The notes under the pieces are model-generated. The model was not told the DNA's origin, made no database searches, and was given only the letters and a program-made list of their open reading frames with translations. A DNA stretch of 64,000 bases from Lytechinus pictus (Eukaryota), in assembly GCF_037042905.1 (NCBI RefSeq), contig NC_087254.1, positions 20,460,001 through 20,524,000 of the forward strand, read 5' to 3'. Position numbers and translations under genes: made by a program. Shown here one piece after another: positions 2,206 through 64,000 of this stretch (position 1 is the first letter of the stretch; each line of letters opens with the position of its first letter).

Positions 2206-44241
<42,036 letters not shown>

Positions 44242-49879: not shown

Positions 49880-50620
49880 CTCTATTTTCCTTTCCAACCT
49901 CTTCACATTTTATCTCTTATCTCTTCATCCCTCTCCCATCCCTTCCTCTCTTTATTTATCCCCCTTTCTCTCTTCCATTTTTATCTCATTCTCTCTTCAT
50001 CTCTCTCCTATCCCTCTTCTCTTTATTTATCCCCCTTTCTCTCTTCCATTTTTATCTCATTCTCTCTTCCATTTTTATCTCATTCTCTCTTCATCTCTCT
50101 CCTATCCCTCTTCTCTTTATTTATCCCCCTTTCTCTCTTCCATTTTTATCTCATTCTCTCTTCATCTCTCTCTCCTATCCCTTCCTCTCTTTAATAATTC
50201 CCCTTTCTCTCTTCTATTTTTATCTCATTCTCTTTTCATCTCTCTCCCATCCCTTCCTCTCTTTAATTATCACCCTTTCTCTCTTCTATTTTTATCTCAT
50301 TCTCTCTCCTATCCCTCTTCTCTTTATTTATCCCCCTTTCTCTCTTCCATTTTTATCTCATTCTCTCTTCATCTCTCTCCTATCCCTCTTCTCTTTATTT
50401 ATCCCCCTTTCTCTCTTCCATTTTTATCTCATTCTCTCTTCATCTCTCTCTCCTATCCCTTCCTCTCTTTAATAATCCCCTTTCTCTCTTCTATTTTTAT
50501 CTCATTCTCTTTTCGTCTCTCTCCCATCCCTTCCTCTCTTTAATTATCACCCTTTCTCTCTTCTGTTTTCATCTCATTCTCTCTTCATCTCTCTCTCTCA
50601 AATCCCTTCCTCTTTAATCA
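49880..50620 (+). repeat. Pyrimidine-rich minisatellite, ~68-72 bp units
   Basis: Unit ctctcttccatttttatctcattctctcttcatctctctcctatccctcttctctttatttatcccccttt, roughly ten copies; almost no G on the + strand. Confidence 0.92.
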
Positions 50621-51296
50621 TCTCTTGGTATGAATATTCATTGGAAGACAGTCTAGTTTCCTGTATACTAAGAACTTTCTTTATTACATTTTAATTACTT
50701 CAATATGTTCATTACACTGTCACCTACCGTTTACATAATAAGAATGCACTATAAGACAAGAGCTCTGCAATATACAAAGCATTACTTTGGTCTAGGTACG
50801 TTTAATTTAGACTGAAAATTCAGCTGTTTCAGAGTAGATTTTTAACATTATCTGATTTTTCAGCCCTCCTATAATAGAGGAAGGGGATGCTGCAAAGCCA
50901 GACAAAGTCTCAGCGGAACATATCCTGACCGAAATAGACTGATTTTTCGGTCTACTACTAAAGCTACTTGTAAAGTCCAATATGTTTTTACCCTGTAAAC
51001 ATGGTCAACCTGGTTATAGCATTTTATTTGGTTTTGATTTAAATCGACAAACCTAACATCCAGTCAACAAATACTATATTTATAAACTTTTCTTGTAATT
51101 CTTCATTCAAATGTGACGAAAGAATGTTCTTTCAAAGAATAACTTTTTTCCAAATCTCAAGCTGGATATATTACTCAGTACCGTGAGTACAATGAAATGG
51201 GATGTAGTTATGCATAATTCTTTGAATCAGACTCTATTATTGAGAACTAATCTTGCTTTGCTACTTCGATTTATCCAAAACCAGATAGTTCATCTA

Positions 51297-54295: not shown

Positions 54296-54465
54296 GATCA
54301 ATCAATCGATTGATCGATCGATTGATTGTTCATTGATAGATAGATTAAATGATTGATTGATAGATAGATTGATTGATTCATTGATTGATCGATTAATCGA
54401 TTGATTGATATTGAGTGATAGATAGATTGATTGATTGATTGATTGGTTGGGTGGTTGATTGATTG
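54296..54465 (+). repeat. (GATT/GATA)n microsatellite running into the assembly gap
   Basis: Tetramer array. Confidence 0.92.
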
Positions 54466-55016
54466 NNNNNNNNNNNNNNNNNNNNNNNNNNNNNNNNNNN
54501 NNNNNNNNNNNNNNNNNNNNNNNNNNNNNNNNNNNNNNNNNNNNNNNNNNNNNNNNNNNNNNNNNNNNNNNNNNNNNNNNNNNNNNNNNNNNNNNNNNNN
54601 NNNNNNNNNNNNNNNNNNNNNNNNNNNNNNNNNNNNNNNNNNNNNNNNNNNNNNNNNNNNNNNNNNNNNNNNNNNNNNNNNNNNNNNNNNNNNNNNNNNN
54701 NNNNNNNNNNNNNNNNNNNNNNNNNNNNNNNNNNNNNNNNNNNNNNNNNNNNNNNNNNNNNNNNNNNNNNNNNNNNNNNNNNNNNNNNNNNNNNNNNNNN
54801 NNNNNNNNNNNNNNNNNNNNNNNNNNNNNNNNNNNNNNNNNNNNNNNNNNNNNNNNNNNNNNNNNNNNNNNNNNNNNNNNNNNNNNNNNNNNNNNNNNNN
54901 NNNNNNNNNNNNNNNNNNNNNNNNNNNNNNNNNNNNNNNNNNNNNNNNNNNNNNNNNNNNNNNNNNNNNNNNNNNNNNNNNNNNNNNNNNNNNNNNNNNN
55001 NNNNNNNNNNNNNNNN
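54466..55016. other. Assembly gap (551 N)
   Basis: Run of N. Confidence 1.
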
Positions 55017-55145
55017 TACTATGCATGTGCATTGTGCATTAAAAATATGAAGATACACTTGAGTACGTTTCGAACAGTTGGGTAAAACAATTATTTTGAG
55101 TGATCTGTTGTTATCATAGTTGTTTTGGGGAGAACTTCTGACACA

Positions 55146-56285
55146 TTATACATCCGTTTGTAACGAGGTCTGTTTGACGGTCGCCACGATGCTGATATCC
55201 TGATCATCTGGAGGAGTGTTGAAGTTTGGAGTAGGGGTAGAACTTGGAGCCCTGTCTCGAGACCGCTTCAAGAGTCGCTGAAGCCACGCTGACGGCTTTG
55301 GAATCTCCGACCAACGACATCGGACAACGCAGAGAGAAACCTGCTTGAAGATGGGTTGCTTGAAACAGTAGATGTAAGGATTGATGCAAGAGTTGATACT
55401 GTAGATTACAGCTGTATGCTTGAAGTAATATAGGTAACACTCCTCAGCGAAGAGACAGATAGTGTGAGGAAGGATACAGATAAAGAAGGCACAGACCACC
55501 ATGAACAGGTTCTTGGTGATTTCAATTTCGCGCTTGTCGATGTTTGAGAGCATCTTCTTCTTGTTAGAAGCCGGCGCCTTGTTGGAACGCCGCAGAAAGA
55601 ATTGCGTCATGTTTCGATACTGCCTTGTCACGTAGATGTATATTTTAAAGTAACAGAAACTGATGATGCAGAACGTGACGACGAAGAGAATCTCTTCGAT
55701 GACATACATGATCCGAAGCTGCAATCTGGTGCCATCGAAGACGCAGAAATGGTTCTCGGTGTTATAACCCAGTCGTCCGAACCCAAGTGATGTGGGCAAG
55801 ACGATCATCGAGAGAGGTGACAGCCAAGCAAAAGCAACCATCAAGACGACGTTCCTCCGCCGGTAGATACGCAGGTATTGTATTCTTGGTCGGGTGATGA
55901 CAAAGAGTCGATTGATGCTGATCAGCGCCAGGTGAACTATGCTGGCCTTGAAAGCAATTAGAGTCACCCCTCCAACCATTTTACAAACCCAATCCTGCAA
56001 CGGCCATCCTCGAAGGTACAATAGCGCCACCGCGTCAAGACTCAGGGTTGCGCACCCGATTAGATCCGACAGTGTCAGACTTACCACAAAGATATTCGTC
56101 ACCGTCTGTAGCTTTCGGGACAAGGCAAAGAGAAGCACGACGAAACTGTTGCCGAGCACACCGACGATGGTTACCATACAGATGACAGTAGCCAGAATAT
56201 AGTTGGTGATCACCAAGACGCGGTTATCGTAGGGGTCGGTTATGTTGACCACAGCATTCCCGGGAAGTGGTACTGGTAATGCCAT
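55146..56285 (-). CDS. Rhodopsin-class (class A) GPCR, Moody/Tre1/melatonin-receptor-like, single coding exon, 379 aa
   Basis: Seven hydrophobic segments; TM1 GN, TM2 LxxxD, TM3 Cys and NRL (DRY variant), TM4 W, TM6 FxxCxxP, TM7 NPxxY; N-terminal NIT sequon; C-terminal TDV*. A splice acceptor (ttttag|ag) sits just before the ATG at 56285, so the ORF-track start at 56339 is probably intronic. Confidence 0.93.
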   Translation of the reverse strand: MALPVPLPGNAVVNITDPYDNRVLVITNYILATVICMVTIVGVLGNSFVVLLFALSRKLQTVTNIFVVSLTLSDLIGCATLSLDAVALLYLRGWPLQDWVCKMVGGVTLIAFKASIVHLALISINRLFVITRPRIQYLRIYRRRNVVLMVAFAWLSPLSMIVLPTSLGFGRLGYNTENHFCVFDGTRLQLRIMYVIEEILFVVTFCIISFCYFKIYIYVTRQYRNMTQFFLRRSNKAPASNKKKMLSNIDKREIEITKNLFMVVCAFFICILPHTICLFAEECYLYYFKHTAVIYSINSCINPYIYCFKQPIFKQVSLCVVRCRWSEIPKPSAWLQRLLKRSRDRAPSSTPTPNFNTPPDDQDISIVATVKQTSLQTDV

Positions 56286-57739
56286 CTCTAAAACAACCAA
56301 AATTGTAAGAATACAATGATTTTTTTTAAAGAACGCCATTTGCCCTTTTTCAATAAATGCTCAAATGGATTCAAGGTGTAATGTTATAAGAATTTGTTTG
56401 AATAATATAAGGAATCATGAGTTACTGCAAATGAATTGAACTATTGTTGCACAGAATTCAGCAAAACCGATTTGATTGTAAGTATGGTGGTATTATCAAG
56501 TAGTTCATTTATGTATTATATTTGGTATATAATTAAGCATTTATGAATATACCATTTTCTCGCGAAGGATTAAAATATTGATTAAAACCTATACCAAGGA
56601 AACAAAGACAAATATGTGACATCGCCCATGTTGTAAAGGTACGGTTGCAATTTGAATTTCGTATGTTAAATTCATCACGAAGTCCTTTGATGAGCTATGG
56701 AATTATTGCAAATTTACATCTAAAAATATTGTAATTAGCAGATACTACTTTATAAAAAAAATAATAATGTATTAATGAATCTTCAAAATACAAATTTTAT
56801 CCATTTATAATTATAACATTCTTATAAAAACAATTAACGATTTTGTTTGAAGTTTGGTGCAATGTCTAATTTTTCAAGATTTTTGTCAGTAAATCTAATG
56901 AATGTCCCGATTCATGTGAAATTATGTCAAATTTATGCTCACTTATTTCGCTCGATCGCATTTTGCAGAACTAATGACGCATGTGTCATGAAAGGCCGAC
57001 TCAAAATTTTAGCTCATGATGTCACTTGAAGGTCTGACATTATTTAAAGTCATCAAAAAATGTTCTAAGAGGCGAAAATTGCGTTATCACAGGAATTTTG
57101 TGATTTATTGGTTGAATTTTTGAGATTTTTCATCTGCCATAAGGAGATTTTGCTCAGCTCAATTCTGCCAACACTGCTTCGGTAGCATTTGCCGTTATGG
57201 TCATAACTATACTGCTATCAAGCATGTGTAATATTCAAGAAAATTTCTTATGCTATAGTTCTTAGCTTAAATAGACTAATTGTTACTAAATAATTTACAA
57301 AGGAAGAAATTACCTGAGAAGCGAAGAAAAGCGGACACAAGTGAAAATAATGATTATTCCCGGATGCGTTCTGTGATGAAGACAACAGACTTGGAATGAT
57401 TGGATAGATGAATCATTGATGTAAATCTGCATATACTTGGCATTCTTAGAATGGCTTCGTCCGACCACTCGGCTGCTGGGGTTTCGCAAAGAAAATGATC
57501 AATAATTGAGGATGGAGATGACAGTAATACTACGTTCGTTGGATACACGTTATGGATTATTGATATCATGAATCCCAGAAATAGATTTAATCCTCACTTG
57601 ATCTCTTGGTTGATGGGTGTTTGTGGTTTCTCGCAGTTAGATAAGATGAGTTTTCCGTGTATCTATTTTCATTTTTTGTGTTTCATATTGTCACTAGATG
57701 TGGGAGATGATTGAAGTCAGTAATAGTCATGATAGTATA

Positions 57740-62279: not shown

Positions 62280-62505
62280 TTGACCGGGCGTTGTACGAAT
62301 GCCTGTCTCATGAACGGGAGGTCGTAGGTTCGATCCCCGGCCGAGTCAAACCAAAGAATTGAAAGATGGGATCTTCCGTCTTCTCATCAGGCACTAGACG
62401 TATTAGAATGGGGAAGGATAATACTAATTGTATGCAGGGCTCGCTGGAAGAGCAGCTTACAGCTGTAGTGGCTATACCCTGTTTAAAGAAGTTAATATTA
62501 AATCA
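62280..62505 (+). mobile_element. tRNA-derived SINE (Meta-core-like)
   Basis: Pol III B box GGTTCGATCCC at 62327-62337 after a tRNA-like arm, then gagtcaaaccaaaga...aaagatgg and a LINE-like 3' end (ctggaagagcagct...taccctg) with an AT-rich tail. Confidence 0.7.
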
Positions 62506-63374
62506 TATTCCTTAATGATTTCCATGACAATTCTTTATAACGTTTATGAACAACAGTCATAACAGAAACATTTCACCTTGCGTTTTTTTTTAAACTTTGC
62601 TGATTAGCGGGAGGCCATACAGAGTTAAATCCTAGTAGTTAACTTCAATAGGACGGGAGGCATAAATTAGCATAAGTAATTAAGTAATTTTCATGTAAGA
62701 ATTAACTATACAATTCTGTAGATCATGTTCATGGAAACGTGCCTGCCAATTTTCGGCGCGATTTCGTGGTCGACGACCGAGATTTCAAGAGATAGGGGGC
62801 TCTCACCTGCCATCCCAAATTTACTAGGCCTAGTTCGGGGCTAAGGTAGCATCTATACTACACTTGCTTAAAAAACCGCAGCAACTCACCTAAATAATCA
62901 ATAATAAAGGTCATCAACAAGTTAGAGGGCTCGAAGTAAAGCTTATTCTACTATACATTAATGGTTGTTTGACAAGTAGATTTATCATATGAAAAACAAC
63001 ATTATTTTAGCTGGCTATATCAGAATACGATTAACATATTTTCAAGGACTTCGATGAAAATGCAAATAAAGCAAAACTACCTCACATAATCATTAGTAAT
63101 ACTCAGTGAATAATGAAAATTTCGTTTCCCTTCATCTTAAAATATTCCGATAATCGTTTTCACATGTCTTTTCAATATTTCTAACAGTTCAAAATAATAC
63201 CGGAGACAGCTGCTATTATATTCGGTGTACGCCAATATTAAATATTCATAATTTCCTGGTTTCCGAGGAGGTCATGATATAAGGGCAAGTTTCATGACAT
63301 AAAAGCGAGATGGATTAGTCTAGATAGAGAAGCACTCCCAGATAGAAGAGGTTAGAAAACCCTATAGGAAAACC

Positions 63375-64000
63375 TTAAAGGAAACGCTTGAGCCACTTCG
63401 CTGGTTTAGGTATACCGGAAAGATCACCGCGGAATAGACACGAAGAAACCTCCCTGAATGTCGGGTGCTTTAAGCAGTATATGAGTGGATTTGTCATAGA
63501 GTTGATAACTAGAATGGTCGCTGTGTACTTAAAGTTAGTTGTATAACATTTATGTGTAGCAAGACACAGAATATGAGGAAACACAAACACGAAGAAGCTA
63601 CAGACTACCATAAACAGGTTTTTCGTGATGTCGATCTCACGTTTCGTCAAAACTCGACGCATTTCCTGTGCCGACTGGGCGCGTCGTCGCTTTTTGTTCA
63701 CCGATCGAGTTTTATCACCCATTGCATACACTTTGGACCTAATGCTTTGTACGCTCTGCCGGAGTGAATACGCACTTGGTCTGCTATCGATGACACTCTG
63801 TCGTGGCGATGACGCACTTGGTCTGCTGTCAATGACACTCTGTCGCGGTGAAGACGCACTTGGTCTGCTGTCAATGACACTCTGTCGTGGCGAAGACGCA
63901 GTTGATCTGCTGTCAATGATACTCTGTCGTGGCGACGACGCACTTGGTCTGCTGTCAATGACACTCTGTCGTGGCGAAGACGCACTTGGTCTGCTGTCAA
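63375..64000 (-). CDS. Second, paralogous class A GPCR, 5'-partial (ICL3, TM6, TM7, helix 8)
   Basis: KREIDITKNLFMVVCSFF...NPLIYCLKHPTF...IPKPAKWL aligns with KREIEITKNLFMVVCAFF...NPYIYCFKQPIF...IPKPSAWL of the neighbouring GPCR. The same frame stays open from 63731 to the window edge. Confidence 0.9.
   Translation of the reverse strand, partial: DSRPSASSPRQSVIDSRPSASSPRQSIIDSRSTASSPRQSVIDSRPSASSPRQSVIDSRPSASSPRQSVIDSRPSAYSLRQSVQSIRSKVYAMGDKTRSVNKKRRRAQSAQEMRRVLTKREIDITKNLFMVVCSFFVFVFPHILCLATHKCYTTNFKYTATILVINSMTNPLIYCLKHPTFREVSSCLFRGDLSGIPKPAKWLKRFL
63771..64000 (-). repeat. Coding minisatellite, 42-bp unit, at least 5.5 copies, encoding SVIDSRPSASSPRQ
   Basis: Plus-strand unit gacgcacttggtctgctgtcaatgacactctgtcgtggcgaa repeated with few substitutions; no stop codon in the GPCR frame. 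Confidence 0.95.

Follow-up and report, generated by a model that had tools for sequence, protein, structure and literature searches.

To our knowledge, coding minisatellites in G protein-coupled receptor (GPCR) signalling loops occur rarely and have hardly been studied outside DRD4, where their functional meaning is still debated. The DRD4 unit is rich in Pro. In exon 3 of DRD4 the VNTR consists of imperfect units of 48 bp, or 16 amino acids, within the third intracellular loop (ICL3) (PMC3164202; PMC9911804). At the right end of the window, i.e. the whole 64-kb stretch of DNA that was analysed, we found the last part of a GPCR gene with a 42-bp array; judged from sequence, this array corresponds to the repeat of human DRD4 but is specific to its own lineage. 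The two share a coding minisatellite of imperfect units, a unit length that is a multiple of three (42 bp or 14 amino acids in the urchin) and a location in the ICL3 exon of a class A GPCR. The urchin array differs in its independent origin in an unrelated receptor, in a Ser-rich unit that is unrelated to that of DRD4 both in sequence and in chemistry, and in a copy number of at least 13, whereas human DRD4 commonly has 2, 4 or 7 repeats. DRD4 is documented to be polymorphic; in the urchin gene there is just a hint of this. The DRD4-style repeat proposed in an initial annotation of this DNA was correct for the architecture (multiple-of-three unit, ICL3 exon); the urchin repeat is not homologous to that of DRD4.

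A second point of comparison is given by receptors that combine a long ICL3 with a short C-terminal tail. The M2 muscarinic, alpha2A-adrenergic and D2 dopamine receptors are built this way and engage arrestin via phosphosites in ICL3. Arrestin recruitment of tail-less GPCRs through the phosphosites of a long ICL3 is reported in PMC13105114. The urchin receptor resembles this class by its 18-residue tail with one Ser and by a Ser-rich ICL3 containing PXXPXXP and PXPP motifs. Unlike M2, alpha2A and D2, in which the phosphosite clusters are of unique sequence, its putative cluster is copied at least 13 times in tandem.

The array goes on past position 64000, and the sequence upstream of this point was known from a single database protein, P0015, a 560-residue NCBI-nr model of the receptor gene that contains TM1-TM5. 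The Pfam profile 7tm_1 (PF00001) matched P0015 with 92.1 bits (cut-off 30.5) over profile positions 1-228, and this match spanned residues 60-550 with the array as an insertion within it. In the window fragment, residues 104-174 matched profile positions 181-260 with 30.0 bits, just under the cut-off of 30.5 because only TM6-TM7 are present. Class A traits were the NPLIY motif in TM7 and the amphipathic helix 8 (KHPTFREVSSCLF) that follows it. The E/DRY and CWxP motifs occurred as recognised variants, NRY in P0015 and FVFP in TM6, where of CWxP only the Pro is kept. By the profile match, NPLIY and helix 8 the receptor is a rhodopsin-type (class A) orphan GPCR.

Counted back from R3.50 of the NRY motif, position 3.32 of P0015 is a Cys, in place of the Asp of DRD4, and no aminergic signature was present; the receptor is therefore not a classical amine receptor. 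The nearest solved chains to P0015 were GPR50 and 5-HT2 receptors, with E-values from 1e-20 to 1e-15. The best of them, GPR50 (E=2.6e-20), aligned over TM1-TM5 only, as did the melatonin receptor MT1 (7vgy, E=8e-15). Typical of MT1 and MT2 is the combination of an NRY motif in TM3 with NAxxY in TM7. A melatonin receptor identity was rejected, since NRY is present but TM7 carries NPLIY rather than NAxxY. The orthologues of the urchin receptor form an echinoderm group with the automatic RefSeq names 'melatonin receptor type 1B-like' and 'moody-like', e.g. XP_003728196 of Strongylocentrotus purpuratus. They have 74-75% identity to P0015, the same NRY at the end of TM3 and apparently the same tandem partner gene, but carry the unit just once, and their ICL3 has a length of 70-83 residues.

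Translation of the minus strand from position 63998 gave one open frame of 207 codons, in which the array, TM6, TM7, helix 8 and the stop codon all lie in common. The frame starts with a partial unit (...DSRPSASSPRQ, 63966-64000) that is cut by the window end, and P0015, with its 13 units, shows the continuation. Four complete units of 42 bp or 14 residues follow (63798-63965), identified by Tandem Repeats Finder and consensus matching; they are of the SVIDSRPSASSPRQ type and read, in order, SVIDSRPSASSPRQ, SIIDSRSTASSPRQ, SVIDSRPSASSPRQ and SVIDSRPSASSPRQ. A degenerate last unit, SVIDSRPSAYSLRQ (63756-63797), leads via SVQSIRSK... into a non-repeated ICL3 linker, SVQSIRSKVYAMGDKTRSVN (63696-63755), which by alignment is homologous to SRKSVTSKIYTINVKTRSES of S. 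purpuratus. The basic pre-TM6 segment KKRRR...KREIDITK (63621-63695) was placed by translation and alignment as the cytoplasmic extension of TM6. TM6 itself, NLFMVVCSFFVFVFPHILCLA (63558-63620), was assigned by Pfam, paralogue comparison and translation, and its sequence in the window fragment reads ...FVFVFPHILCLA. TM7 (63471-63527, translation and Pfam) contains NPLIY at 63477-63491, helix 8 and the 18-residue tail occupy 63378-63470, and the TAA stop codon lies at 63375-63377. The initial annotation had described an array that is stop-free in the receptor frame, with five Ser per 14-residue unit in S-P-R and R-x-S contexts, and a degenerate copy that runs into the basic pre-TM6 segment; translation bore out each of these points.

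Tandem Repeats Finder reported the array at 63766-64000 with a period of 42 bp, 5.6 copies, 91% matches, no indels and a score of 400. The consensus was matched five times at no more than 3 mismatches, for which shuffled sequences gave an expectation of 0, and no further match at this threshold was found anywhere else in the 64-kb window. The 'MTADQVR' frame is also stop-free across the array, because the 42-bp unit contains no stop in it. As any stop-free 42-bp unit stays open when repeated, a stop-free array alone is weak evidence for coding. Support for coding instead comes from the continuity of the frame with both flanking halves of the receptor and from the substitution pattern. Among the units of the SVIDSRPSASSPRQ type (P-type) every difference was synonymous, a third-position change in a Ser or Pro codon, and the non-synonymous unit variants retained Ser/Thr (P-S to S-T). 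In the receptor frame, 5 of the changes from the consensus were synonymous and 3 were not (ratio approx. 0.2, binomial P=0.026), compared to 2:5 and 0:7 in the two other frames; this excess is based on 8 changes in 5 units and is confounded by gene conversion between units. The LTADQVR... frame of the open reading frame track was rejected as coding, as it has no continuation into receptor sequence and the changes between units are mostly non-synonymous in it.

The other half of the gene is given by P0015. There TM5 is followed by about 60 unique ICL3 residues and then by 13 units, and these share their frame with the linker and with the beginning of TM6. An alignment with the relatives put the array after ...RIYVFINRQHRNL and before KREIDITKNLF, i.e. 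between TM5 and TM6. The alignment to the GPR50 structure 9l9o extends beyond TM5 and enters ICL3, where it stops shortly behind the residues that correspond by homology to ...RIYVYISRQHRDL; from the aligned letters and the molecule name of the chain, our reading is that the fusion partner starts at this point. The AF2 model of P0015, of low confidence (mean pLDDT 39.5) and used for the order of secondary structure only, showed five helices, a coil at 253-476 and the TM6 helix. ICL3 measured 273 residues in P0015, 83 in S. purpuratus, 70 in Diadema and 23 in the neighbouring paralogue. The claim of a GPCR with an array that is coding and located in ICL3 was accordingly confirmed, by the frame shared between TM1-TM5 of P0015 and TM6/TM7 of the window and by RNA reads inside the array; the join of TM1-TM5 in the receptor frame, which had been called for as a check, was seen in P0015.

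P0015 and the window were not identical. P0015 lacks one unit, at a place that follows the last SIIDSRSTASSPRQ unit and precedes the SAYSLRQ unit, and a single 42-bp indel accounts for all differences in the unit region, the remainder of the stretch being the same. The frame of P0015 also shifts in TM6, and its tail was reproduced by the loss of one base at 63585-63588, which truncates the receptor (TM6-TM7 lost). From the differences of one unit and 1 nt, P0015 comes from another assembly or another allele, or is an edited model.

A segment that occurs once in the orthologue (...GTNSPSSRKSV... in S. purpuratus, versus ...SRPSASSPRQSV...) could be aligned to the unit, in protein as well as in DNA. 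This alignment to native ICL3 sequence indicates that the array grew from such sequence in the Lytechinus lineage, without insertion from elsewhere. A mobile or dispersed minisatellite was rejected on the same alignment and on the lack of a second copy in the window. No array was present in S. purpuratus (P0030, P0031), in its close relatives (P0014, from read-derived contigs), in Diadema antillarum (P0028) or in the paralogue. The stretch just before the array (...NASSVGQS...) resembles a decayed unit. The comparison shows that the array arose when a native ICL3 segment of 14 residues was duplicated in tandem, after the split of Lytechinus and Strongylocentrotus and before that of the sister species, with a growth of ICL3 from approx. 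80 to approx. 270 residues.

As comparator we used the intronless paralogue in the same window (55146-56339, minus strand), an ORF of 397 residues (379 in the model P0001) with a 23-residue ICL3, no repeat and a Ser/Thr-rich C-tail of 58 residues. From TM6 to the C-terminus it is 52% identical to the receptor with the array. Its own database relatives are sea-urchin proteins, with an identity of 98% for Lytechinus variegatus and of 86% for S. purpuratus, so that the window is a Lytechinus genome, probably L. pictus. The C-tail of the paralogue holds 13 Ser/Thr, a layout opposite to that of the receptor with the array. A polypyrimidine tract and AG were observed directly before the SLSITDF codons of TM2 in the strongylocentrotid contigs L001 (1-140) and L002. 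The gene with the array therefore has a TM2 intron, unlike its intronless neighbour, and as they carry intron sequence the two contigs are DNA or unspliced RNA.

The initial annotation had assigned the receptor to an expanded, possibly chemosensory family, which was not supported. The window holds two paralogues, 27 relatives were found at E<=1e-10 in a search of 5.8 billion proteins, and the two-gene tandem pair appears to exist in S. purpuratus as well, where P0003 and P0030 are both listed with a longest contig of 37.77 Mb and thus seem to share a chromosome. A phmmer search of 1.84 billion representatives gave no other GPCR with the repeat. Hits with several matching stretches, such as P0043, were rejected as translations of unrelated simple repeats (SILDSRF), and the GPCRs P0059, P0080 and P0143 have a long ICL3 that is not repetitive. 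In the literature we found no paper on tandem repeats in the loops of sea-urchin GPCRs.

Four other features of the window were recorded. A tRNA-like fragment with a B-box (GGTTCGATCCC) is located at 62290-62350 on the plus strand, 1 kb downstream of the receptor gene; ARAGORN called no tRNA at this position, no second copy was found in the window, and the fragment may be a SINE or a tRNA-derived relic. Just downstream of the stop codon of the paralogue, a (GATT)n microsatellite with approx. 40 copies is followed directly by an N block of approx. 550 bp (54308-55020). At 49899-50622 (plus strand) there is a CT-rich complex tandem array, whose periods of 71, 94, 165 and 278 bp are nested and whose GC skew is strongly negative; it yields a spurious ORF of 224 residues. 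At 42710-43035 a unit of 163 bp occurs twice in tandem, with 88% identity between the copies.

With regard to function, we asked what the units could add to the loop. The receptor and its orthologues end 18-20 residues past the Cys of helix 8, and one Ser is found there. Arrestin phospho-motifs have been defined as PPP, PXPP, PXPXXP and PXXPXXP (PMC8795447). When S/T alone are counted, a PXXPXXP (S-R-P-S-A-S-S) and a PXPP (S-A-S-S) occur once in every unit. The whole ICL3 of P0015 holds 12 and 15 of these motifs, respectively, compared to 3 and 5 in S. purpuratus and 0 in the C-tail of the receptor, with the reservation that Ser-rich disordered loops easily match phospho-motifs from composition alone. 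Motif counts were reported not to differ between groups of receptors with different GRK selectivity (PMC8795447). The tiny tail may leave the ICL3 array to supply the Ser clusters, and each unit adds five Ser that make up a PXXPXXP and a PXPP motif. The array would then be a multiplied phosphorylation and arrestin-docking platform in ICL3, or a platform where kinases or scaffolds dock in another way, and with units gained or lost there may be more or fewer docking sites. Of the readings considered, this multiplication of a putative phosphorylation/docking cluster is the likeliest, and we give it almost an even chance.

The main rival of the docking platform is a neutral passenger, an array that grew through replication slippage or through unequal exchange within a disordered, insertion-tolerant loop and is translated, but whose length and sequence are without consequence for signalling. 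ICL3 is the most length-variable region of GPCRs (PMC10033409), and the array is young, absent in S. purpuratus and Diadema and with units that are 91% alike. AF2 showed coil only over the array, with a pLDDT of approx. 25. The orthologous ICL3 of 83 residues is already above a reported threshold of about 45 residues (PMC10033409), so that extra length need not alter the gating class. Neutrality accounts less well for differences between units that lean synonymous in the receptor frame only, for non-synonymous variants that keep Ser/Thr, and for an array that was kept in frame in two species. We regard the neutral reading as a serious possibility, although on the whole somewhat doubtful.

Length itself could also be what matters: the enlarged ICL3 would then mainly gate the G-protein pocket, by steric or entropic means and with effects on selectivity or basal activity, rather than serve as a phosphorylation platform. 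Long ICL3s control the access and selectivity of G proteins (PMC10033409), and the loop here is more than 3 times as long as in the orthologues. The ancestral loop, however, already exceeded the threshold of about 45 residues, and the conserved Ser pattern within the units is left unexplained by such autoregulation, which we find improbable.

Whether the receptor gene is in working order was examined by constraint, transcription and comparison with the sister species. For the final 106 codons, starting at KKRRR, comparison with the strongylocentrotid orthologue (L001) gave a Ka of 0.077, a Ks of 1.29 and a Ka/Ks of 0.06. A DNA contig of the sister species (X16) covers 63048-63837 with 57 differences, of which approx. 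36 fall in the 3' flank (approx. 12%) and at most 21 in 463 coding bases (at most 4.5%). The sole sizeable coding indel in it is a deletion of 21 bp, hence in frame, in the degenerate last unit (reported at 63773). The run of the sister species also contained short array contigs at raised depth; the array therefore predates the split of the two species.

Transcription was followed in X21, the one true stranded RNA-seq run used, of which approx. 6% was read. Four reads fell on the gene, two on TM6-TM7 and the C-terminus and two inside the array, a number that means low expression and is compatible with pre-mRNA. In most stranded libraries a first mate on the plus strand denotes RNA from the minus strand. 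All four first mates were on the plus strand, which is the orientation expected for the gene. No reads were found in 62900-63343 and no joints among the X21 reads, in the same 6% of the run. X1 and X5 were rejected as evidence for transcription, as their contigs continue at flat depth through intergenic DNA and are DNA-like.

The TM6 indel of 1 nt seen in P0015 was absent from the window and from two further read sets of the species, X1 and X5. A -1 shift of the same kind is present in the current S. purpuratus model XP_003728196.2 (P0030), at a T6 run in the homologous spot of TM6. At this site no shift is seen in an older model of S. purpuratus or in L001 and L002, the contigs derived from reads, which points to an error of assembly or model. 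We read the TM6 frameshifts of the nr models as probable errors of this kind. Candidate causes of the shared shift are a homopolymer error, a faulty model spread by protein-guided annotation, or real null alleles.

These results point to a working gene. They show the 42-bp array to be a coding minisatellite, located in the ICL3 exon of a class A GPCR gene that is intact, transcribed and under selective constraint. A decaying gene, in which the array would mark relaxed constraint on a receptor that is no longer functional in the lineage, is suggested by the truncating shift of P0015 and by the very low expression, but is very improbable in view of the indel-free window, X1 and X5, the Ka/Ks value, the orthologous positions of NPxxY, helix 8 and stop codon, and the similar shift in S. 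purpuratus next to an intact older model and read contigs, which indicates an assembly or model error.

The array contains at least 13 units, and 13-14 when the difference between P0015 and the window is considered. This difference is a hint of length polymorphism within the species, P0015 having one unit fewer than the window, either as an allele or as a difference between assemblies. Short-read contigs collapse the array, and in the X1 run array words occurred at 6-20 times the single-copy depth. An X1 contig in which the pre-array DSGINASSVG is joined directly to the last two units was rejected as a short allele, because graph assembly collapses arrays. That the docking platform is moreover a dosage series, in which the number of complete arrestin phospho-motifs varies naturally and alleles segregating in Lytechinus populations would set the strength and duration of arrestin binding stepwise, is in our judgement unlikely. 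If true, it would offer a natural system for mapping the number of ICL3 phosphosite clusters onto desensitisation.

The urchin array provides an independent example next to DRD4, in which the repeated element is a compact Ser cluster that matches published arrestin phospho-motifs. It is located in a receptor without a C-tail able to compete for arrestin, and close relatives have 1 copy where this species has 13-14. Should the number of units affect arrestin binding, the locus would be a graded series of constructs made by evolution; should it have no effect, the array would be a measure of how far ICL3 tolerates insertion in a receptor under otherwise strong purifying selection.
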